A stretch of 64,000 nucleotides of DNA from Diplonema japonicum (taxonomy: Eukaryota; Protista; Euglenozoa: Diplonemea). The notes under the pieces were generated by a model. That model was given only the letters and a program-made list of their open reading frames with translations, was not told where the DNA came from and searched no databases. Each line of letters opens with the position of its first letter. The first letter of the stretch is position 1. Made by a program: the position numbers and the translations under genes. The DNA is taken from contig OZ025744.1 of assembly GCA_964019335.1 (NCBI GenBank), forward strand, positions 62,001 to 126,000, given 5' to 3'. Below, piece by piece: positions 351 to 63,729 of this stretch.

Positions 351-3300
351 TTAACTAACCAGCCAGCTTTTAGAATACGGCTTCCCGTTCAGCTTCCGGA
401 CTGCCATGCCGTCTCCTGAGGCATTCCACCCACTCCATGTGGGGCTGTACTCAGAGGCTTCGAATTTAGCACGTTTCGGATAGTTCGTCTTGCCTCTGAC
501 CACTTTGATCTGCGGGAGAAGTACACCTTGCCGTTTGTTTGTGTGAAGAATTTTCATGGGGGAAGACTGCCGGATCCAACACTTGGTACGGGTTCGTATG
601 TCAGGGCAAATACCGTGCGACATGATTTCGCCTGAGAGTGGTGTGCACTGGGTGAAGGTTTGCTGCGGCTTAGGCCGCCTGACGAGACGCTGCGAGACCA
701 CTGCTTTGCGGCTAGTTTTCTGGATGTACTTCGACCACTTGAACCCGTCTGTTATGATCTCCTTCATGCTGCTAGGTAGAGCTTCCATAGAAGGTGATGT
801 TGGCGGTAGTACGTTCTCACGTTGGTAGTCTTCTTCAGGTCGCTGTTGTTGTCGGGGACGAAAAGCCACCGCTGCAGGAGGCGCTTTTGCTAACAAGTGG
901 GTTTGGAAAAACCTAAACTTCATGCGCTTTTTCACCTTCGCTGCAAGAGGCGTTGTCGAGGGTTCGCTGTCCTGCAGCTCTGTGTCACTGCAGGACTCCT
1001 CTTCATTTTCGACTTCTGCTTCTTCTTCTTCTGTCTCAGCCTCCTCTACTTCCTCCTTCTTGATCACGTTTTTTTCTTCCTTCTTCAGCAGCAACATGAT
1101 CTGCTTCCCTGTCTTGTAAAAGACTTCGTACTGCTGCACCATTTTCGAAAAGTTGTATCCTTTGTCTACAACTTCGCCTTCGTTGGGCTTTGCCGCACCT
1201 GATGTGTCTGGCGGCGCTTCTGCGTCCGTCTTCTTTTTCTCAGCAGCGTTGGTCTGCAGCACTTGGTACAGGCTCACCCCGTCCTCCTCCTCTTCTTCTT
1301 CGTCGGACGCCCCTTCTTTTGCAAGGATGGAGCTCTTGTTGATCATCTTGAATGATGAGAATCTTCGAGACATGCCCATCTCCCGCATCTGTGCTGCAGG
1401 GTTGATGGGCCATGGGACGTCGTTGTAAAGATTGTGCTTCGTCGTGTCCAGCTGGTAAAGCCCGGGGAGCTGTGACTTGGCTAGTGACGTGACGCGTTCG
1501 CCCCACATGGTCCACAGCACCACGTAACAATCCCTCCCTGCCGTCATCACGCACACAGGACTGTCCACTATCTGAAGCGCTGTCACCCCCTCTTCGTGCG
1601 CCTTCCATGTGTGCAGTAATTTTGCCGACGTGCAAGGCATGGACCCTGCCGACGGGCGGCGCAGCCCTCGCATTCCTACATCCGGCGTCATCGCCCCGTG
1701 CCGACCACCACTGCCCACATGTGTCTCGATCCCTTCCTTGATGCTGTACAGGTTGATGATACCCAAATCGTCCGCCGTGTACAGCAACGCAAGCTCGGAG
1801 TGAAATGCCATCAACACTACGCTAGGTGTGTACCTAGTGCTGGTGCTGTGGTTGTTCACCCACCGCGACATGCAGGTGTACGGGTGCGCCACGTTGGGTC
1901 CTGAGAGGGTCCATGTGTGGAGACCGCCACTGCAGTCGGAAACAGCAAAGCACGGATACGGCTTCAGAGGTATGACACATGTCACCTCCGATGTGAGCGG
2001 GCTGCTTGTACATTCAGCAAGCTTGCGCCATTGCGAGGCGATGCCGTTGACTGTAGGATTCGTGTCCCAGACGGAGACGATGTTCTGCCCTTCACCGAAG
2101 AGGATGACGCCCATCTCGGGGTAGAGACAGAGAGACTTGGCGCTCATGCGGGTGGCACGTCCGCCTGTGGTGAGGAAGGGACCCACATTGAAGATGCCTT
2201 CGATGTGTGACACCACCGTGGTCACACCATCGGTTGTGAGGCAGAAGATAAAGGGCGTGCCAGGTACCATTGCAATATGCGTGATTTCGCAGCTGGAGGG
2301 GAGCACTGTCTGCGAGATAGTGTTTCCTGTAGACGTGTTGATGGCAGCCAACCGCCCGTCGAAGCACCCCATGTAGCACTTGCTGTCCTCCTGCGTGACG
2401 TGCAACACTCTGATGTCGTCTGTGAAGAGCTCGTCAAAGGTCAGCAGTATCCTGCCTGTCACAATGTCCCACACCCGGAGCTCTCGTCTTGACGCAGTGA
2501 GAAAGGACTTCAGGGAGGGTATGTACTGCGCAGTGGAAATGGGGAAGTCGGTGGCTGTCTTGGGATCCAGAGACTTGCCCTGCATGTTGTACTGAAACAC
2601 ATAAATACGCCTCCCAGAGGAGGTGATGATCTGCTTCGTGCCGGCATGGAAGGTCATCGACGTCCACTTCTTCGTCTTAATCTCCGACTTGGAAGCACCC
2701 GGCTCGCACAGCAAGGTCTGAACACACCGTAAAGTCCTGCAGTCCCACACCTTCAGCATACCGGCCTCGTCCAGAGACAGGCATTGCGGCGTGCTTGGGA
2801 CCTGAACAATCCCCACAATTCGGTAAGAATGCGGTTTCGACCCATCGCGCAGGATGAAGGGCTTGGAGTTCGGAACGTTGATGGCCCATGCAAGAGGGGT
2901 GTACTCATGACCGCACGACACAAGAAGGTTGTACTGGTGGCAGTAAATCATTCCGGTGACGCCGCGTTTATGTCCAGACAGAGTTTTCAGCGTTTTGTGT
3001 GTTTTTAATGACAGGCACTTGATGGTCGCATCGAGGCTGCACGTCACCACGTCACCAGCGTAAGGGAGAAACAGAACACCAGTAATGGCGTCTCTATGCG
3101 GGGTGCACATTGCGATTACAACGGGTTCAGAGACTTCCTTGTACTGTGTTTTGGTGGCGAAGATGTCCCAGACTTGAAGTTCGCCGTTGCGACAGCCGAC
3201 GTAAAGGTGGCGGGTCTTGTGGTTCCACACAAGCTTCGTCGCGGTTACAGCGCATTTCCGTTTGGTTCTAACCTGTGCGGTCTTGGATTCGTAGACCCTT

Positions 3301-4145
3301 ACGAAGGTGTCGGCGGTGGCAGTGATGAACAGGTCCTCTTTTTCTATAACGAGGAAATCAACCAGCGCGCCTTGCTTCGGCGAGATTGCGTGGCTCTTGA
3401 GGACATGAAAGCTCACATCGTCCAGGATCTTAATGCTGTCAACATCCTTATTCCTGATGTGCGTCCGCAGGGTAGAAGTCGCAACGTTGTGCGACATCGT
3501 CTGTATTCTGCTTAGCGAAGCGCTGGATTCCTTGTGAATGAGAACGTAAGGCCTGATATCGTCTTGAGATATAGTACCTGCCCTGCCCTTCATGACAGAG
3601 TCGAAGAGGTATGCAAGGAAGATTTCCCATGTGATGCGGTTGGTCTTGTTGTGGTCTATGGCACGGAAGAGCTTCCACAGGCAGAATTCAACGTCGGATT
3701 GGACTGTGAAGTTATCAGCGGTGATCTTGTCGGTGCCCTGCCCTGTGAGGTCCCAGCGTGTTTTCATGTTGGCTTCCCAACGGTTTACCTCTTCTCTTAA
3801 AATGGTCCCTTCTGGGGACTTTAAGAATTCTTCGTCTGAAGTGTTTGAGTACAGGTCTAGACGGAGTTTGTACCTTTCTGCCTCTGTCTGTGCGTGTTCT
3901 CTTGACCTTGTGCCAGGTGGGCTTTTGGTCGTGGAGGTGCCCCTTATGAAGTCCGACACAAGCATCACGAACGAGTACACTGCCAGGCTGCCGACGAAGA
4001 AAAGTTGTAGCTTGCCGATGTGCACCTCTAATTTTTGCATCAGGGCGATGGCGTACTGTCTGGATGTGACGTGCCAGTTGCCCACCTCTTCTTCCTTCGG
4101 TATGCCCTTATCCTCTTCGCTTTCGCTGTCATTGTCGCCACTCAT
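351..4145 (-). CDS. WD40-repeat protein with N-terminal EF-hand-like motif (WDR49/WDR64/EFCAB8-like, probably ciliary)
   Basis: 1264-aa ORF; LFRAIDHNKTNRITWEIFLAY EF-hand-like motif followed by many WD repeats (LSGHKRGVTG, LKVWDCR, LRVWDIVTG, WKAHEEGVT); acidic and basic tail. Confidence 0.8.
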   Translation of the reverse strand: MSGDNDSESEEDKGIPKEEEVGNWHVTSRQYAIALMQKLEVHIGKLQLFFVGSLAVYSFVMLVSDFIRGTSTTKSPPGTRSREHAQTEAERYKLRLDLYSNTSDEEFLKSPEGTILREEVNRWEANMKTRWDLTGQGTDKITADNFTVQSDVEFCLWKLFRAIDHNKTNRITWEIFLAYLFDSVMKGRAGTISQDDIRPYVLIHKESSASLSRIQTMSHNVATSTLRTHIRNKDVDSIKILDDVSFHVLKSHAISPKQGALVDFLVIEKEDLFITATADTFVRVYESKTAQVRTKRKCAVTATKLVWNHKTRHLYVGCRNGELQVWDIFATKTQYKEVSEPVVIAMCTPHRDAITGVLFLPYAGDVVTCSLDATIKCLSLKTHKTLKTLSGHKRGVTGMIYCHQYNLLVSCGHEYTPLAWAINVPNSKPFILRDGSKPHSYRIVGIVQVPSTPQCLSLDEAGMLKVWDCRTLRCVQTLLCEPGASKSEIKTKKWTSMTFHAGTKQIITSSGRRIYVFQYNMQGKSLDPKTATDFPISTAQYIPSLKSFLTASRRELRVWDIVTGRILLTFDELFTDDIRVLHVTQEDSKCYMGCFDGRLAAINTSTGNTISQTVLPSSCEITHIAMVPGTPFIFCLTTDGVTTVVSHIEGIFNVGPFLTTGGRATRMSAKSLCLYPEMGVILFGEGQNIVSVWDTNPTVNGIASQWRKLAECTSSPLTSEVTCVIPLKPYPCFAVSDCSGGLHTWTLSGPNVAHPYTCMSRWVNNHSTSTRYTPSVVLMAFHSELALLYTADDLGIINLYSIKEGIETHVGSGGRHGAMTPDVGMRGLRRPSAGSMPCTSAKLLHTWKAHEEGVTALQIVDSPVCVMTAGRDCYVVLWTMWGERVTSLAKSQLPGLYQLDTTKHNLYNDVPWPINPAAQMREMGMSRRFSSFKMINKSSILAKEGASDEEEEEEDGVSLYQVLQTNAAEKKKTDAEAPPDTSGAAKPNEGEVVDKGYNFSKMVQQYEVFYKTGKQIMLLLKKEEKNVIKKEEVEEAETEEEEAEVENEEESCSDTELQDSEPSTTPLAAKVKKRMKFRFFQTHLLAKAPPAAVAFRPRQQQRPEEDYQRENVLPPTSPSMEALPSSMKEIITDGFKWSKYIQKTSRKAVVSQRLVRRPKPQQTFTQCTPLSGEIMSHGICPDIRTRTKCWIRQSSPMKILHTNKRQGVLLPQIKVVRGKTNYPKRAKFEASEYSPTWSGWNASGDGMAVRKLNGKPYSKSWLVS

Positions 4146-4260
4146 ATATGGTTTTTTCTTCTTCTTTTTTTTTTTTTTTTTTTCCCTTGTAGACCTAGGT
4201 TAAGAATACAGGTAATTCATGCCTTAAGAATATGAAAAAAAATAGTTAAAAAAGCGGTTT

Positions 4261-4293
<33 letters not shown>

Positions 4294-4537
4294 TGTAAAT
4301 CGTATTTTTTTTCTTTTTTTTATAGAGACAGTCTTTAAAAAAAAAAAAGAGAGGAACAAAATGTGAGAGGGTTTTTTTTTTTTCCCTTTTTCTTTCCCCC
4401 TCCTTTTGTTTTCCCTAAGGAAAAAGAAAAGGAGATTTGGAAAGAAAAAAAAATGAGAGATTTTGTAAAGAAAAATAATTCTATAAAGAACTTCTAGAAT
4501 GGGGGGGGGGGGGGGATCGAAAGTTTTTGAAAAATTC

Positions 4538-5739
4538 TTTTATTTCACAGTTTATTTCCCTCGGCCTAAATTCTCAAAGAGCGGGGAACGTAAGTAGAGT
4601 TTTTCCCCCCCGGGCAAATAAACTAACATAATTCTTCCAGCTCTTTTTTTTATCAAAGATGCCAAAAAGCAAGAAGGTCAAGCGCATGGAAGAGATCTAT
4701 TGAGTCAAACACATATAAGAACCCTTCCTATGAAAAAGCGTGGACTGCGATGCTCGAGTCAGAGAACATAGCAGGGAAGCCGCGTGAGCAAGATATCGTT
4801 ACCTACTTCCAAAGCAGGAGGGAAGCCGGGCTCAAGGCATCGAGCCTCTGGTGTCTTTACTCCAAATTGAACGCAACCTTCAAAGCCAAGTACAACTGCA
4901 AACTACAAGCTTGGCCTCGCTTGACGTCTTTGTTAAAGTCCTGGGACCGTAACGAAGAGCGTCACGTGGCTGCCACTTTATCAAGTGACGAGGTTCAAGA
5001 TTATATTGAACAAAAAAAAGGGACCGCTAACGCCGCTATCGTTGCTTGCATGTTTAGCGGGGGCATGAGAGCTTGCGAAGTGGTGTCGATGGAAATCAGC
5101 GACATTGTTAAGAATCAAGTTGATGGGAGGTTTATCTGCACCATAGCACGTTCAAAGACGGGTGGGCACACAAAATTCCACATGTCTGGCATTTATGCAT
5201 CAGCAATGGACCAGTACTTGTTGCTACGACCTAAGAAAGAGACCAAGCGTCTGTTCCTTTCGGAGAGAGGAACGCCCATCGGCAAAAACAAGGTATACAA
5301 ACTGGGGTACGATGTGGCATCCGTCATCGGAAAGCCCGCCAATGAGATATCCAAGTTTACGTCGTTTCGACGTTCTGCGGCCACAGCTGCTGCTTGAAAA
5401 CGGCGCATCTATCTCCATGATGAGTAGATAGTTCCCACTCCACCCCTTTTTTTCTTTTCTTTTGCCATTTTTATTTTCATTCTACAAACAAGCGTGATAG
5501 TCCAGCGTATTCCGGAGTCCACGTCCCGCTCTTTGAATTTAGGCCTCGGGAAAATAAACTGTAAATAAAACGCCGTATTCCGGGGTAAAGTAGGGTTTAC
5601 CTTTTCCCTCGACAGATTGTCCTGGCTTCTCGGAACCAATTTTTACCGAGCGAAGCGAGGTAAAAATTATGTCCTCGGGAGCCACAATCTGTCTCGGGGA
5701 AATAAACCCTACTTTATTGCCCCGGAATAAATAGTTATT
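4538..5739 (+). mobile_element. Crypton-like tyrosine-recombinase element, family A (asymmetric IRs + terminal hairpin)
   Basis: Left IR 4538-4591 is the imperfect reverse complement of 5521-5570; 154-nt hairpin at 5576-5729; ends AATAGTTATT; encloses a recombinase ORF. Confidence 0.8.
4659..5431 (+). pseudogene. Tyrosine recombinase (Crypton-type), disrupted
   Basis: ORF 4750-5397 contains SSLWCLYSKL, GGMRACE (catalytic R), RSKT (K) and PIGKNKV, then KFTSFRRSAATAAA where the H of HxxR is missing. A frameshift continues ENGASISMMSR; the C-terminal W/Y box is absent and the N-terminus is frameshifted. Confidence 0.8.
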
Positions 5740-5743
5740 TTTT

Positions 5744-7474
5744 TCACGCCAAAGTGTTCGGGGCCAACCTTCCCAACGGGGTTCTTTTGACCTTCTTTTT
5801 CAGAGTATGACTTGCGTCCTGCTTCTGTGCGACCCCATCCTGCTCTTTGCGCAACACACCCCCACCCTCAGTTGCTAACCAGTCCGCCAGCGCCCAAGAT
5901 ATCCCCCTCGTAATCGGGTTGGCAAACTTCCCATCATAAGCGAAGGGGGGAACGGGGAAAAAACAGTAGTCGGTGCCGAGAAGAGGGGGCTGGTGGTTCA
6001 AAGTAACGGGTGGAAGAGGGGACCTGCAAGGTTTGTTTCGTGACAGGATGCGCATGATGACGGTACGGGAGGCGGCGGGGACCTTGTTGGAGCAAGGGGG
6101 GCTGGTGCTCTGCCCGCCGAAACTGAAGGCCCGCAGGGTGTAGTTGTCTGTGAGACAGTTGGAAATGTATCTCACAACATGCGCAGGAATCTCATTATCC
6201 GTCAGGGTCAGCCTTGAAAGACTAGTGTTCCCGCGCAGTGCAGTGCCCCAGGCGTAGCCGCCCATTTCTGATGAAAAGTTGGAACCAAAATCCAGTGAGG
6301 TCATGGTGGTGCTCTCCCCCACAACATCTGCTAACCCAACGCTGCCCTTCTCGCCTATCCCGCACTGGTTCAGATTGAGCATCGTTAGGCCTGACCTCTT
6401 CAGTGATTTCGCGAGTTCCATTGCACCGCTCATTCCTATGGGGTTGTCCTTTAGAACGACTGTCTTGACCCCGGCTATTGTCGAAATCAGTTGCGCCACT
6501 GCTGTTACCCCCTTGTCGGTCATGCCCACCTTTTCCAAGCTTAAAGATTCTATTTTGCATTCTCGTTTCGTGTTTAGAATCGCTTCGCACATTTGCACAA
6601 CACCGTTGTTGCCGATGTCCGGGTTGAACCCGAGGTTCAGGTCGCGTATACCGGAGAACGCGACTCCATGGAGGGAGCTGCGGAGGACATCTGCCGTCAG
6701 CATGGTGTTCTGAAGCTCGAGCTGATGGAGCTTTTGAGACATTACAATCGAGCTTGAAAGGTGCCCCAACATGGTAAACGCGTTCCCTTTGAAATTGAGC
6801 TCTCTTAAGGGTGAGAGGGGATCGCGGAGAACGTCTGCAAGGCAATGCAACCCGTTGTTGGTCAGACCGACCTCACGAAGACCAAGCGAGGTAAGGGATG
6901 TGTTGAATGGAAGGGCATAATGGGTTAAAGCAGCAGCCCCATGGTCCTGTAATGGGTTCCCTCCAAGGTGGAGTTGAACCAGGTTTGTGTTGTGAGGGCC
7001 AAGGCCCTTTGACAGATGGTGTATACCTACCGAGGTGATGTGATTGTCACCAAGCTTTAAACGTGACAGTGGGGGGTTGGAACGGAGCACCTCTCCGATG
7101 GCAATGCAGGAGTTGTCGTTTAAGCCGCATGCGAAGAGCTCCATTACTGAAACACCCTTCAGCATGGTTTTTCTGAAGAGGCTGTCCGTCCCCGTGCATC
7201 CCGGTTTGTTATAGGAGAGGACGAATTCTGCGTACACGTCGAGCCGTCCCCATGCCTTTATCATGCCTACTATCGATTTGAACATTCCCTCGCCCATGCC
7301 GAGGTGCGACAGCATCAGCTTCCCGAAGGGTCGCCCCTTTGCCTTGCTCGTCTTCAGGTCGCTGACCACTCGCTGGCTCACCGCGGTCCCCGTCAGCCTG
7401 CACTGCTTCACGTAAATAGCTATCATCTCGTCGATACAGGTCTCAAGGTGTGGCCGTTGTAGGGCGTCTGTCAT
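5744..7474 (-). CDS. RNI-like leucine-rich repeat protein (NLRC3/CARMIL-like LRRs)
   Basis: 576-aa ORF with ~28-aa LRRs (LSRLKLGDNHITSVG, LVQLHLGGNPLQDHGA, LTMLNLNQCGIGEKG). Confidence 0.8.
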   Translation of the reverse strand: MTDALQRPHLETCIDEMIAIYVKQCRLTGTAVSQRVVSDLKTSKAKGRPFGKLMLSHLGMGEGMFKSIVGMIKAWGRLDVYAEFVLSYNKPGCTGTDSLFRKTMLKGVSVMELFACGLNDNSCIAIGEVLRSNPPLSRLKLGDNHITSVGIHHLSKGLGPHNTNLVQLHLGGNPLQDHGAAALTHYALPFNTSLTSLGLREVGLTNNGLHCLADVLRDPLSPLRELNFKGNAFTMLGHLSSSIVMSQKLHQLELQNTMLTADVLRSSLHGVAFSGIRDLNLGFNPDIGNNGVVQMCEAILNTKRECKIESLSLEKVGMTDKGVTAVAQLISTIAGVKTVVLKDNPIGMSGAMELAKSLKRSGLTMLNLNQCGIGEKGSVGLADVVGESTTMTSLDFGSNFSSEMGGYAWGTALRGNTSLSRLTLTDNEIPAHVVRYISNCLTDNYTLRAFSFGGQSTSPPCSNKVPAASRTVIMRILSRNKPCRSPLPPVTLNHQPPLLGTDYCFFPVPPFAYDGKFANPITRGISWALADWLATEGGGVLRKEQDGVAQKQDASHTLKKKVKRTPLGRLAPNTLA

Positions 7475-8337: not shown

Positions 8338-9441
8338 CTACTTCAACATCAACACCATCCTGTAAGAAATGTGGTCCGGAACGAAGACGATTTCTTTCTT
8401 TTCGGCTCTTTCGAAGAGGATCCCGATGTTAACGGCGCCGGGGTTTGTTTGGTTCGCGAGCACCGCGAGTGCAGAGTAGGCCGAAGACCCAACATCGACA
8501 GACGCCTGGGGGTCCCACGTACCCCCTGCATCAGAAGACGTCCAGATCGTCATGTTCTGCCTGGTCACCGAAGCCTGCGTGGGCCCGGACAACATTAAAA
8601 CGTCTAGTCCTTCAGGGGAAAACCCACCAGTGTTAATAGTCGACATTTCACAACCCTCAACCGACTCAGGAACACGCACCTGGTAAGGCGGGAGAAACGT
8701 GTCACCATGGTCGTAAGAAACAGCCTGCAACCGGTGAACTCCAAGAGACCTCGAGTTAACCAACACCGACCCATTGTACAACTCCACAGCTTGACATTCG
8801 TTGGGGTGGTAATGCGGGGAAGTAATAAGCCCTCCAATAGACCATGTTGCTCCGTTGTCGTCCGACACCAGCACATGCCCGGTGCTGTCCTCCCCATCAC
8901 CGTGAATAATGTTGGTGTGGTATGACGGGACTAATATCCTGCCTGTTTTCAACTGGATGCTTGCAGGTGGTCCGGTTCCAACCCATTTCCAAGAAGGGTC
9001 GACGGTGGTGGAAGAGATGTCAGTTGGGTTTGACCAGGTGTCGCCGTTGTTGTCGGACATTATAAGATGGACCTCGCGGTTGTCGCGGCAGAATGGGATT
9101 AGAATACGTCCTGTGTGGATTTGAACAGGGGCGGCGTTTCCAATGGTGTGGCCTGGTTCGGTGTAAAGAGTTTTTATGTTGCCCCATGTCTGGCCGTGGT
9201 CCATGCTTTCTTTGTAGACTAAGGTGGTGGGAGCGTTGTCCGCGCACGATCCCGTTCTCGCCTCGCCGAACGCCAGAAGCTTGCCGTTTGCCAGCTGCAG
9301 CAAATCGGGGATTTTAATACAGTAGTAACCCGCCTCTCCTTTGCTGAACACATTGACCTCCCATGTTGACAATGATATTCGCAGCGCGGTACCGCAGATC
9401 ACAAGACTTAATAGTGTAAGCAAGTGGATGACGATGTTCAT
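8338..9441 (-). CDS. Secreted GH33 sialidase-like protein (BNR/Asp-box propeller)
   Basis: Likely start MNIVIHLLTLLSLVICGTAL (signal peptide) after an A-tract; five Asp boxes (SMDHGQTW, SDNNGDTW, SDDNGATW, SYDHGDTF, SSDAGGTW); NECQ, NSR, RQNMT and SAYS catalytic motifs; RIP motif reads KIP. Confidence 0.85.
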   Translation of the reverse strand: MNIVIHLLTLLSLVICGTALRISLSTWEVNVFSKGEAGYYCIKIPDLLQLANGKLLAFGEARTGSCADNAPTTLVYKESMDHGQTWGNIKTLYTEPGHTIGNAAPVQIHTGRILIPFCRDNREVHLIMSDNNGDTWSNPTDISSTTVDPSWKWVGTGPPASIQLKTGRILVPSYHTNIIHGDGEDSTGHVLVSDDNGATWSIGGLITSPHYHPNECQAVELYNGSVLVNSRSLGVHRLQAVSYDHGDTFLPPYQVRVPESVEGCEMSTINTGGFSPEGLDVLMLSGPTQASVTRQNMTIWTSSDAGGTWDPQASVDVGSSAYSALAVLANQTNPGAVNIGILFERAEKKEIVFVPDHISYRMVLMLK

Positions 9442-10230
9442 TTTTTTTTTTCTTTTTTTTTTCCCCCTTTTTTTCCCCCTCTTTTTTTTTTTTTTTGAAA
9501 CGTCCGCGGAAAATAAAAGGGAAAACAATGAAAGGGAAGAAAAAAATAAGGTTGAAAGGGGGGGGGGGGGGGGGGGTGTAATGGAGGACAAACGGAAATG
9601 GGCGAAGGAAATATTAAAAAAAAATATATGAGTTAAAGGAAGTCTTTGTGAGACGCCCCCTTGTTCTCATGCTCTACCTGCACCTATCCCCCTTCAGCAG
9701 CGGTTTCTCCTTCTTCGGTGGTCGTGCCGGCCTCCTCCCCAGCTTGGCTACTTTTTCCCTTCTTTCCTTTGCCCTTTGCTTCCCCAGCTCCTCCAGGTCG
9801 TACTTGGTCTTCGTTGATGCAAAGATTGCTCTTCTACTCCACCCGATCACCGCCTTCGTCCCTCCGATCAAAAAAGGGAAAAAAAAAAAAAAAGCGTTTG
9901 AAAGTGAGGAGACAGTAAAAGAAAAAAAAATCATAAAACTACCTTTTTTTTCTTCTTCTTTCTTTCTTTCTTTTTATTCACTTCCCTCCTCCCGTCCGGC
10001 TTACTTTTTTGTGCTTGAACTGGCTGTTCAAATCGTGCCCATTATGGGGAAAAAAAAAAGAAGAAGAAAAAAAGGCCTGTTGCTTGAAGCCCTCCCTGCC
10101 TGAAGCCTTGAGAAGTGACAAAGGACAAATAATAAAATGGGGGGGGGGAAGAAATTAGGAGCACATATGCATCTAATACCCAAAGCATTCCTTTTTATCT
10201 TTTCGCTTTTTTTAAAGATTCTTTTATTCT

Positions 10231-10586
10231 TTTTATTTAATTCTGTAAAGTTACATGAGGAAATTCCTAAAGAGCCATAAAAATCAGAAATCACTTTATC
10301 GTTCACGAGTAAAAATAAAGTGAAGAATAAAAATAAAGTAATAGGCCGAATTTGGCTTAAAAAAGTGCCGTAAAAATAAAGTAAAATCTGATTTTTACTC
10401 TGAGCAATTTTCGGGCTTTTTCGGCATTCGTCTTCATTTTTTGCATCTGGTGGCCGCTGACACCGCCGTAGGTCAGTGGTCAGGATCCTCGGCCACTGTT
10501 TCAGGCCCCCCGATTTTATCGAAAAAAGTTCAGGGTCCAGGATTTGATCTGGCGTCTCCAGGAGACGAGTGCGACGACTTTGCGCT

Positions 10587-10624
<38 letters not shown>

Positions 10625-11139
10625 GCTTTTACAAACGTCGCTTGACACATACATTAATCGCCTCGCAAAATATGGACGAAACCCAACCAACCCAAACCAC
10701 AGCCAGGTATCTGAGGCAAAAAACAGTCAGGCATCCGAGGCAAAAGAGGCATAAACACACTTTACCACGTTTCCGGGCCACCAAGCATCACACCTGAGCA
10801 AATGCCGAAAATTACACTGGCCATGCATACAGGCGTTCTTTTGCACAATACCTTGTTGATGAAGGAACTTGCTGTTTTGGCTGGAAGTCAGACCTGATCA
10901 AGCCCCCATGATCAAGCGCCGTCACAAATTACACAAAACCTACAGAATTCTGTCAATTTGACATCGTCTTCTCAGGCACTCAGGCTTAGTCTTGACATCA
11001 GTGTGAACATTTCGCAGAAGTGAACATAAAGGGTTCACAGTGTCCGAAATTTCCTCATTTAACTTTACAAAAAAATTAAATAAAATATCATATTAAATAA
11101 AAATCAGGTAATCTGATTTTTATTTAATAAATAGTCATT
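10231..11139 (+). mobile_element. Crypton-like element, family C, with decayed tyrosine-recombinase C-terminus
   Basis: Left IR 10231-10265 pairs with 11048-11085; perfect 17-bp hairpin 11091-11129; ends AATAGTCATT. 10801 onward translates NAENYTGHAYRRSFAQYLVDEGTCCFGWKS (HxxR and GWKS boxes), with SSAVTNY following in another frame. Confidence 0.75.
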
Positions 11140-11607: not shown

Positions 11608-12179
11608 ATTTCACTCTTCGTCATTTTCTTCACTCACTAGGGGCCTCATTATTTAACGCGAAATGGCCATTGTTTAACGCGAAACGGCCATTATTTAACG
11701 CGAAATCGCCATTATTTAACTAGTTAAATAATGAGATTTTGCAGTTAAATAATGGCCCTTCAGAGTGGAAAAATGAGTCTCGCCGTGGAAAAAAATGCAC
11801 CCAACCCCTTGAAAAATCTTTTTGGGGTGGGCGTATTTTGACTATTTTTGGCCATCTGAGGCCATTCCAGCCCTTAAAAGTGGGAATAAGTGCCTTACTT
11901 CCCCTTTAAATGCCACGGCGAAATAGCAACCCCATATTACCTTAGGAAAATCCCCAAAAAGGCTGACCTGCGTGAAAAAAAACAGCAGTGAAAGCAGTGA
12001 AGAGTGAGTGACTCAAATGACGAAGAGTGAAATAAAACGACTTACTTGCCGCCAAATGAGCCATTATTTAACTCTCGTTACCCGTTTTTTTGCACTCGGG
12101 CCCTGCGGGCCCTCGTGCAAAAAATTCGGGAACTCGAGTTAAATAATGACTCATAATTTGTTGGCAATAAATAGTTATT
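11604..12179 (+). mobile_element. Non-autonomous Crypton-like element, family B, copy 1
   Basis: Perfect 23-bp IR 11604-11626/12015-12037; terminal hairpin ~12042-12169; AATAGTTATT end; 21-bp tandem repeats at 11647-11720; near-identical copy at 63155-63729. Confidence 0.9.
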
Positions 12180-63154: not shown

Positions 63155-63729
63155 TTTTATTTCACTCTTCGTCATTTTCTTCACTCACTAGGGGCCTCAT
63201 TATTTAACGCGAAATGGCCATTATTTAACGCGAAACGGCCATTATTTAACGCGAAATCGCCATTATTTAACTAGTTAAATAATGAGATTTTGCAGTTAAA
63301 TAATGGCCCTTCAGAGTGAAAAAATGGGTCTTGTCGTGGAAAAAAATGCACCCAACCCCTTGAAAAAATTTTTTGGGGTGGGGGTATTTTGACTATTTTT
63401 GGCCATCTGAGGCCATTCCAGCCCTTAAAAGTGGGAATAAGTGCCTTACTTCCCCTTTAAATGCCACGGCGAAATAGCTACCCTGTATTACCTTAGGAAA
63501 ATCCCCAAAAAGCTGACCTGCGTGAAAAAAAACAGCAGTGAAAGCAGTGAAGAGTGAGTGACTCAAATGACGAAGAGTGAAATAAAACGACTTACTTGCC
63601 GCCAAATGAGCCATTATTTAACACTCGTTACCCGTTTTTTTGCACTCGGGCCCTGCGGGCCCTCGTGCAAAAAATTCGGGAACTCGAGTTAAATAATGAC
63701 TCATTATTTGTTGGCAATAAATAGTTATT
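63155..63729 (+). mobile_element. Non-autonomous Crypton-like element, family B, copy 2
   Basis: Near-identical to 11604-12179 over its whole length, with unrelated T-rich flanks. Confidence 0.9.

Follow-up and report, generated by a model that had tools for sequence, protein, structure and literature searches.

A subterminal hairpin with recurrent tandem mismatches in a very small Cre-like tyrosine-recombinase transposon of Diplonema japonicum

In the genome of the diplonemid protist Diplonema japonicum, within a stretch of 64,000 nucleotides (contig OZ025744.1, positions 62,001 to 126,000; hereafter the window, with positions counted from its first letter), the interval 5576-5729 is a hairpin in subterminal position within a dead copy of a DNA transposon, itself very small (1.2-1.7 kb), whose sole gene encodes a Cre-like tyrosine recombinase. 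The stem of this hairpin is interrupted by tandem mismatches of one dominant type, TC opposite TC in a CTCG context, which read on the other strand as GA opposite GA in CGAG, and sequence comparison supports the view that these interruptions are a selected structural feature of self-folding DNA. We consider this folded DNA to be probably under selection because the mismatch sites recur in five families with diverged and covarying stems, in the inverted-repeat pair of the element, in its non-autonomous copies, and in a second organism. The best overall explanation, which we regard as rather probable, is a transposon moved by a Cre-like recombinase and keeping a selected intrastrand fold of its joined ends, by which the recombination site would be presented.

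The element and its hairpin

The window copy belongs to the family that we call A, and its parts stand in the order T-run, ATTTCAC, left inverted repeat (IR-L), recombinase remnant, right inverted repeat (IR-R), hairpin, AATAAATAG-TTA, and T-run, with the coordinates collected in Table 1. Its extent was set by the span of similarity between copies, and the form of its ends matches that of all the other families. A previous reading of the window from its letters (the sequence-only reading) had called the hairpin terminal, which has to be corrected to subterminal, given that ATAG-TTA and the T-run lie beyond it, while every motif string which that reading quoted was found in its place. The two inverted repeats are about 36 nt long and form a 2x2 loop, CTCG against CTCG, once both ends are joined and folded, with CCC-TC-GGCC (TC at 4561-4562) facing GGCC-TC-GGG (TC at 5546-5547). 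Within the hairpin, CCC-TC-GAC (TC at 5609-5610) faces GTC-TC-GGG (TC at 5694-5695) in the first trunk mismatch, and GGCTTC-TC-GGA (TC at 5630-5631) faces TCC-TC-GGG (TC at 5675-5676) in the second. Folded as DNA, the plus strand of the 154 nt reaches -48.1 kcal/mol and the minus strand -46.8 (z = -9.7 and -8.9), the shuffled sequences having a mean of about -19 to -20.

Five families (A, A2, B, C, and D) share this plan and these ends, the terminal form common to all of them being (A/T)AATA(A)ATAG-YTA-T(n), and A, B, and C can be aligned at their ends only. A search of the 62.5-Mb assembly gave at least 17 further family A copies with 83-99% identity over the hairpin, and the tree of family A bodies is a star without resolved branching. 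Family B includes an autonomous element of about 1.67 kb (L061:~1428-3098), with one long sense-strand open reading frame (ORF) that spans 1785-2918 and is intact at 378 amino acids, the only other listed ORF, of 102 amino acids, lying antisense inside it; open frames of 405-440 amino acids were found at further loci. Family B also includes ORF-less, non-autonomous copies of the kind known as MITEs (miniature inverted-repeat transposable elements), about 570 bp each in the window, for which a first look through the genome gave 685 candidates; 40 were scored, the full-length ones being mostly 97-99% identical, and head-to-tail tandem dimers occur among them. The family B tip GCAC-TC-GGGCCC-TGC-GGGCCC-TC-GTGC stands at 12092-12118 and again at 63642-63668, where shuffles lead one to expect 0 matches.

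As for read depth, assembled Logan contigs, which break off at the repeat, were compared over 3300-7300. In runs X4 and X6 they cover the window element at about 12-25 times the depth of its flanks, in rough agreement with the copy number. Over the hairpin, summed contig depth reaches about 70-130 times the value for the flanking gene in the two large runs X2 and X5, and about 15-27 times in X4 and X6; transcripts or many variant contigs could account for this.

The recombinase

Judged by its sequence, the enzyme of these elements is a member of the tyrosine recombinase superfamily (PF00589) and is Cre-like. Against the Pfam Phage_integrase profile, the window ORF scores 35.4 bits where the curated cut-off lies at 27.1 (E = 1.1e-8), and the intact family B protein gives E = 4.8e-9; R142, K169, H249, R252, W275, and Y284 are invariant in that protein and 15 relatives. 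The window recombinase is dead because its ORF ends after an RRSAATAAA stretch and is thus without the W and the Y; compared with other family A copies, a deletion of about 170 nt near 5422 has removed the C-terminal part, where the last catalytic residues lie in those copies. A complete unbroken recombinase frame was found in none of the 12 family A copies examined. Among solved structures, the closest to the family profile is Cre (E = 1.5e-12), with XerC/D weaker and IntI4 at E = 1.8e-3. Cre acts on duplex DNA. A word-indexed protein search with the intact recombinase gave no match, and a full HMMER scan returned 1549 relatives; the closest of these (34-40% identity; P0002-P0007) come from Logan contigs of roughly element length (1.3-2.0 kb), and the more distant ones include insect proteins and a transcript of the diplonemid Rhynchopus humris.

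Stem mismatches

Loop tables were made from DNA folds of representatives of four families (A, A2, B, and C, the last being L063), counting as tandem the 2x2 interruptions. TC/TC or GA/GA in a C_G context accounts for 11 of the 14 tandem interruptions, a type that a random tandem mismatch would take in about 2 of 100 cases; given that the families are related, the 14 cases are not fully independent. Family A contributes four of this type (two in the trunk, one in the IR pair, and one in the tip) and no others, A2 contributes two besides one TT/GC, B two besides one GC/TT and a CTC/TCT triple in its IR pair, and C three besides one TT/GC. The sequence-only reading had proposed GA/GA in CGAG as the recurrent interruption and had suggested tabulating mismatch types against random decay; the tabulation agrees with it in that one type dominates, the stems covary, and young copies carry the mismatches, and it also shows TT opposite GC recurring in A2, B, and C, a further type that is absent from that reading. 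The A hairpin holds six occurrences of CTCG and CGAG taken together, where shuffles give 1.07 (P = 2e-4), and values are similar in B and C.

Between the A and A2 stems there are compensatory changes at seven pairs, with the mismatch site still unpaired, and over 17 family A copies the mismatches are invariant, the single exception being a substitution beside one site (CTCGTGG in L016). They are also present in the 97-99% identical family B copies and in intact autonomous ones, and their presence in such young and undamaged copies means that they are not decay. Moreover, they are kept in the ORF-less MITEs, which argues for a cis-acting function of the DNA and not for a function of the mRNA. 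Bulges of 3 nt likewise recur in the hairpins.

The mismatches of trunk and IRs also have a polarity, the pyrimidines lying in this genome always on the ORF strand and the purines on the other. Accordingly few of the unpaired plus-strand bases are purines (6 of 24 in B, 8 of 41 in C, and 5 of 30 in a family A "flop" copy), and the minus strand is predicted to be 3.6-3.8 kcal/mol more stable in B and C (L063).

Related elements in another organism

Two metagenome contigs, L082 and L083, were found with the distant recombinase relative P0010 as query, and in each of them a recombinase ORF is accompanied by an IR-L/IR-R pair and, adjoining IR-L, by a hairpin some 180 nt long, an arrangement with the same circular order of parts as in the D. 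japonicum elements. The 2x2 loops of this hairpin are CGAA/TGAG, CGAG/CGAG (CAAG/CGAG in L082), TGAG/CGAA, TGAT/GAAA, and CGAA/TGAG; all five are purine-purine on one strand, and 37 of the 41 unpaired bases are purines. In L082 the purine-mismatch strand is predicted at -53.2 kcal/mol against -47.7 for the other, and is thus favoured by 5.5. These contigs keep the purine-purine loops with different flanking pairs, and their loops suggest that tandem G·A-type mismatches of uniform polarity mark a wider group of elements.

Target site and joined ends

All the family B copies with flanks (35 of 35) read T(n)|ATTTCAC ... AATAAATAG-TTA|T(n), with the T-run always on the plus strand of the element, that is, they lie in poly-T and in a single orientation. 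Tandem copies are spaced by 2 to 14 T. At L077, a family C end is followed by a T-run and then by the start of a family D element; elements insert beside each other's ends.

When right and left ends are joined in silico, they fold as one continuous hairpin, of 255 nt and -73 kcal/mol in A and of 228 nt and -68 / -72 kcal/mol in B. In both of these folds IR-R is paired to IR-L, and the A-run that ends IR-R to the T-run, the IR stem being interrupted by CTCG/CTCG or CTC/TCT, although in integrated elements the two repeats lie 0.4-1.5 kb apart. At the mismatch positions IR-L and IR-R differ exactly by complement without reversal, a relation that is hard to account for with two duplex binding sites and is easily explained if IR-L pairs with IR-R.

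Proposed mechanism and its alternatives

In the reading that we prefer, that of a joined-end fold under selection, the element would be excised as a circle by conservative recombination inside its flanking T-runs, as proposed for Cryptons, and would be reinserted into other T-runs. The circle junction would read ATAG-TTA-T(n)-ATTTCAC, and once the ends are joined, in a circle or in a tandem, one imperfect hairpin of about 230-255 nt would run from IR-R through the 154-nt hairpin and the T-run to IR-L, with the T-run crossover site inside its stem. This intrastrand fold would be what selection maintains through the covarying stems and through the pyrimidine-pyrimidine tandem mismatches held on the ORF strand, with 3-nt bulges and, within 5'-CGAG-3', tandem G·A on the opposite strand. 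The fold may assemble, present, or regulate the recombination site, with the purine-mismatch strand as the better folder, much as in integron attC sites. The GCGAAGC tip would be a nucleating mini-hairpin of unselected orientation that can be lost and that is often inverted, most likely by template switching across perfect arms.

Several observations weigh against this reading, and many of them concern the tip. The family A tip reads ACC-GAGCGAAGCGAG-GT, with GA on the plus strand as the sequence-only reading had it, in 9 of the 13 tip-bearing copies, and it is the reverse complement, with TC on plus, in the other four (L009, L010, L015, and partly L011), where the same 12 nt are turned around and the trunk CTCG sites are unmoved. 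The tip is deleted in five family A copies (L012-L014, L016, and L018), and two types of tip deletion are each common to two loci. In family C, both heads are flipped between L077 and L081. Some 100 family B copies have TC..TGC..TC tips and two are fully flipped; about 46 others have a perfectly paired tip (GA..TC), with the loop GCA in 29 and TGC in 17. In addition, a third family includes a short-hairpin subfamily of about 10 copies. The existence of tip-deleted and short-hairpin derivatives in several copies suggests that tip and trunk may help rather than be required. As for the strands, the window family A copy has GA on plus in its tip and GA on minus in its trunk, which offset each other, so that both strands fold about equally well, and in L082 and L083 the polarity of the mismatches relative to the ORF is reversed. 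The recombinase, in turn, is far nearer to the duplex-acting Cre than to IntI; the cleavage positions and the circular intermediate are inferred; and folding itself is deduced from predictions and sequence comparison.

The strand specificity proposed in the sequence-only reading therefore survives for the trunk and the IRs, whose polarity is uniform, and is lost for the GCGAAGC tip, which flips, and for the fully paired family B tips. The folding of each strand as DNA, which that reading had suggested, gave the purine strand an advantage of 3.6-5.5 kcal/mol in B, C (L063), and L082, and near equality in the window copy. GNA loops, taken there as a rule, are not one, given that the loop is GGC/GCC, with GNA on neither strand, in two of the four intact autonomous family B copies examined.

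The tips flip while the trunk CTCG sites were never inverted in 17 family A copies, and together with the ratio of about 100 to 2 among the family B TC/TC tips this means that inversion is no built-in step of each replication or transposition. Tip inversion is frequent where long perfect arms lie beside the loop and rare with 6-bp arms, and this dependence on arm length and perfection fits template switching or recombination across the hairpin arms. Hence the inverted tips may be taken as indirect evidence that the DNA folds in vivo.

Among the alternatives, we take as possible a strict mechanism of the attC/CTX type, in which only the purine-mismatch strand would leave the duplex and fold, one pair of strands would be exchanged with duplex poly-T, and replication would resolve the product. 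The uniform polarity of trunk and IRs in all five families and in L082 speaks for it, as does a predicted strand gap of 3.6-5.5 kcal/mol, larger than the 2.12 of attC (PMC5027507); the recurrent 3-nt bulges recall the extrahelical bases of attC, and IR-L and IR-R obey the same mismatch rule despite their separation of 0.4-1.5 kb. Orientation-specific insertion is also expected from it, but an asymmetric duplex core explains this equally well. The tip, however, flips and is dispensable, the window hairpin shows about the same stability on both strands, Cre is the nearest enzyme of solved structure, with IntI4 reaching only E = 1.8e-3, and no source of single-stranded DNA was found.

The occurrence of both tip orientations is no difficulty if the joined ends extrude as a cruciform on a supercoiled double-stranded circle, where both strands would fold, bringing IR-R and IR-L close or offering a four-way junction, because one arm would then always carry GCGAAGC. 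The joined ends do form one long palindrome, and a Cre-like enzyme is expected to act on duplex DNA. Nevertheless, we find the cruciform doubtful, since it gives no reason for the uniform purine/pyrimidine polarity of trunk and IRs in every family, and since tandem T·C mismatches would weaken one of its two arms.

It seems improbable that the palindrome serves only as a row of duplex sites bound by the recombinase, or as an RNA structure of the 3' untranslated region, with the CTCG pairs as half-site asymmetries and DNA folding needless. CTCGG-like words do recur, the hairpin does lie 3' of the ORF, and perfect-stem tips and short-hairpin derivatives do exist. Yet the motifs are exactly mirrored and complemented, and not reverse-complemented, which is meaningless for a duplex dimer site; the stems covary; the feature is kept in ORF-less MITEs; the tip inversions point to hairpin formation in vivo; and the other organism keeps its purine-purine loops with different flanking pairs. 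GCGAAGC, furthermore, is exceptionally stable as DNA, the sole RNA value being the 39 C of the tetraloop r(GCGAAAGC) (PMC13037366).

It is scarcely credible that an old palindrome, once perfect, acquired the mismatches by random decay, for although the window copy is dead and family A copies have hairpin deletions, 11 of the 14 interruptions are of one type, they stand in 97-99% identical young family B copies and intact autonomous ones, and they are invariant in 17 family A copies save for the one adjoining substitution (CTCGTGG in L016).

Three further candidates were rejected. A Helitron or HUH mechanism fails because there is no Rep/HUH protein and the enzyme is a tyrosine recombinase; a DIRS, Ngaro, or VIPER retroelement, because there is no reverse transcriptase ORF, nor room for one in 1.2-1.7 kb, and the ends are an inverted repeat plus hairpin in place of split direct repeats; and a parvovirus-like flip-flop of the whole hairpin, because the trunk CTCG never inverts in the 17 family A copies and the family B TC/TC tip stands at about 100 to 2.

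Other families and neighbouring features

The features of the window, with the tandem dimers found elsewhere in the genome, are listed in Table 1. In the 5' part of family B (window 11640-11740; L061:1463-1575), direct and inverted copies of CATTATTTAAC(GCGAAA..GC) make up a second, 5'-subterminal palindrome, and these copies may be candidate accessory binding sites of the recombinase. The hairpins of family C are T- or Y-shaped and two-headed, with a GCGAAGC unit at the tip of each head (L077:3106-3304; L063, minus strand; L081:2426-2625). In the third family, at least 30 other copies hold about 105 nt more within the hairpin than the window copy does, and about 10 copies have the short form. 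One family C copy end (L079:1650-1720) adjoins a sequence like the 3' end of a tRNA (GGTTCGAACCCC...), which may represent insertion beside a tRNA gene, and a perfect hairpin of about 22 bp (AAAACTCCCGGACGGAAAAA...), with no relation to the CTCG pattern, lies at L063:2820-2890, just upstream of a family D-like element end. Finally, on the minus strand of the window, 8338-9591 is an ORF of 417 amino acids with repeated Asp-box motifs (SxDxGxTW), the look of a bacterial-type sialidase, and a lysine-rich, low-complexity N-terminus.

Table 1. Coordinates of the element parts and of other copies (window positions unless a contig is named)
Feature	Position	Strand	Remarks
Decayed family A element	4542..5737	+	Starts ATTTCAC after TTTT run 4538-4541; ends ATAG-TTA before T-run 5738-5744
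IR-L	4538..4573	+	Includes T-run/ATTTCAC end; CTCG with TC 4561-4562 opposite TC of IR-R; inverted repeats I1 and I3
Recombinase ORF remnant, 215 amino acids	4750..5397	+	Pfam Phage_integrase match
IR-R	5535..5570	+	Ends GTAAATAAAA, complement of the 5' end; CTCG with TC 5546-5547
Imperfect 154-nt hairpin	5576..5729		Two TC/TC trunk tandem mismatches, 3-nt bulges, one 3x3 loop
Hairpin tip ACC-GA-GCGAAGC-GA-GGT	5645..5661	+	GCGAAGC mini-hairpin 5650-5656 flanked by one tandem GA/GA mismatch
Third-family copy	10232..11137	+	Same plan (IR-L, IR-R, hairpin, AATAAATAG-TCA-T run); hairpin a 13-bp perfect stem only
Family B non-autonomous copy (MITE)	11608..12177	+	Within poly-T; hairpin ~12046-12174, tip 12092-12118
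Second family B MITE	63159..63727	+	Tip 63642-63668
Head-to-tail family B dimers (L035, L041, L049)	G000 C95:332288-333451, C47:149236-150425, C113:76460-77574		2-14 T between copies

Comparison with known systems

A hairpin-ended tyrosine-recombinase element has apparently not been described before, no report of such elements having been found in the literature on tyrosine recombinases, Cryptons, hairpins, MITEs, and diplonemids. The closest comparison by enzyme is with the Cryptons (Goodwin 2003; Kojima and Jurka 2011), which have been described without terminal inverted repeats and without hairpins (PMC3212892; PMC13465315, 2026), the word "hairpin" being absent from both papers. As in Cryptons, the element encodes no enzyme but a tyrosine recombinase (with no reverse transcriptase, DDE, or Rep protein), crossing over presumably takes place in a short sequence that is identical at both ends (here the T-run), movement presumably passes through a circle, and non-autonomous derivatives are found. 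Insect proteins also stand among the relatives of the recombinase, and insects are a group with known CryptonI and CryptonA elements; together with the diplonemid homologue, these insect proteins give the only hint as to a named Crypton clade (F, S, A, or I). In contrast to Cryptons, the present elements have, besides the paired repeats IR-L and IR-R, a hairpin some 130-190 nt long, measure just 1.2-1.7 kb, use a poly-T target in fixed orientation, and have MITE-like copies in the hundreds.

The building blocks of the fold are known separately: d(GCGAAGC) melts at 76.5 C and the tetraloop RNA r(GCGAAAGC) at 39 C (PMC13037366). The exact heptamer forms the tip in A, A2, and C, and the trunk mismatches are CGAG on one strand, in keeping with tandem sheared G·A pairs in 5'-Py-GA-Pu-3' (Py, pyrimidine; Pu, purine). 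Both motifs are known from phage single-strand origins and from promoters, and no literature report was found of either as a building block of transposon ends. If selection acts on them as proposed here, a eukaryotic genome would here offer natural cases of the d(GCGAAGC) mini-hairpin and of tandem G·A in CGAG kept by selection.

Helitrons, Helentrons, and IS200/IS605 elements carry out single-strand transposition guided by hairpins with HUH enzymes, and resemble the present elements in that their ends are asymmetric, a hairpin lies subterminally on the 3' side, and insertion goes in a specific orientation into short targets rich in T; the difference is the tyrosine recombinase here, with no Rep/HUH. 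Parvoviruses and adeno-associated virus (AAV) have terminal hairpins in flip and flop forms, the whole terminal palindrome being inverted in about half of the molecules. The two-headed T/Y hairpins of family C and the tips in both orientations are similar to these, whereas only the tip inverts here, and in family B the ratio is about 100 to 2 and not 1 to 1.

In the recombination of CTX attP by XerCD, a folded stem made from two inverted segments rebuilds a duplex core and recombines with a duplex target. A folded stem of inverted segments would serve as the core site in both cases, but bacterial host enzymes and the single-stranded genome of a filamentous phage are at work there. To our knowledge, only bacteria, with their integrons and CTX-type phages, are known to have tyrosine recombinases that act on single-stranded DNA in folded form.

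The integron attC site has a purine-rich bottom strand, which is the one recombined, usually with a GAA loop, and this strand folds 2.12 kcal/mol better than the top (PMC5027507). The present hairpins have in common with it an imperfect stem with bulges, the enrichment of purines in the unpaired parts of one strand, the GAA loop, a strand gap of a few kcal/mol, and a tyrosine recombinase as partner; the likeness to integrons and XerCD drawn in the sequence-only reading is thus closer than had been said as regards the attC-type skew and loop, and does not extend to the enzyme, which is nearest to Cre and not of the IntI type (IntI4 E = 1.8e-3 against 1.5e-12 for Cre). The present hairpins, by contrast, belong to a eukaryotic host, are 2-3 times longer, carry tandem G·A in CGAG where attC has its unpaired central spacer, and have a tip that flips; the likeness is one of sequence and predicted folds.

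We tentatively raise the possibility of a eukaryotic superfamily, present in this protist and in at least one other organism, in which a Cre-like recombinase would recombine a folded single strand chosen by its sheared G·A pairs, bulges, and GCGAAGC tip. If this is true, it would be the eukaryotic counterpart of integron attC and CTX attP recombination. A compact integrating element of 1.7 kb, specific for site and orientation, is now defined, and its intact recombinase genes, hundreds of near-identical MITEs, simple poly-T target, and covarying ends with G·A mismatches make the use of DNA secondary structure by eukaryotic Crypton-type elements directly testable.

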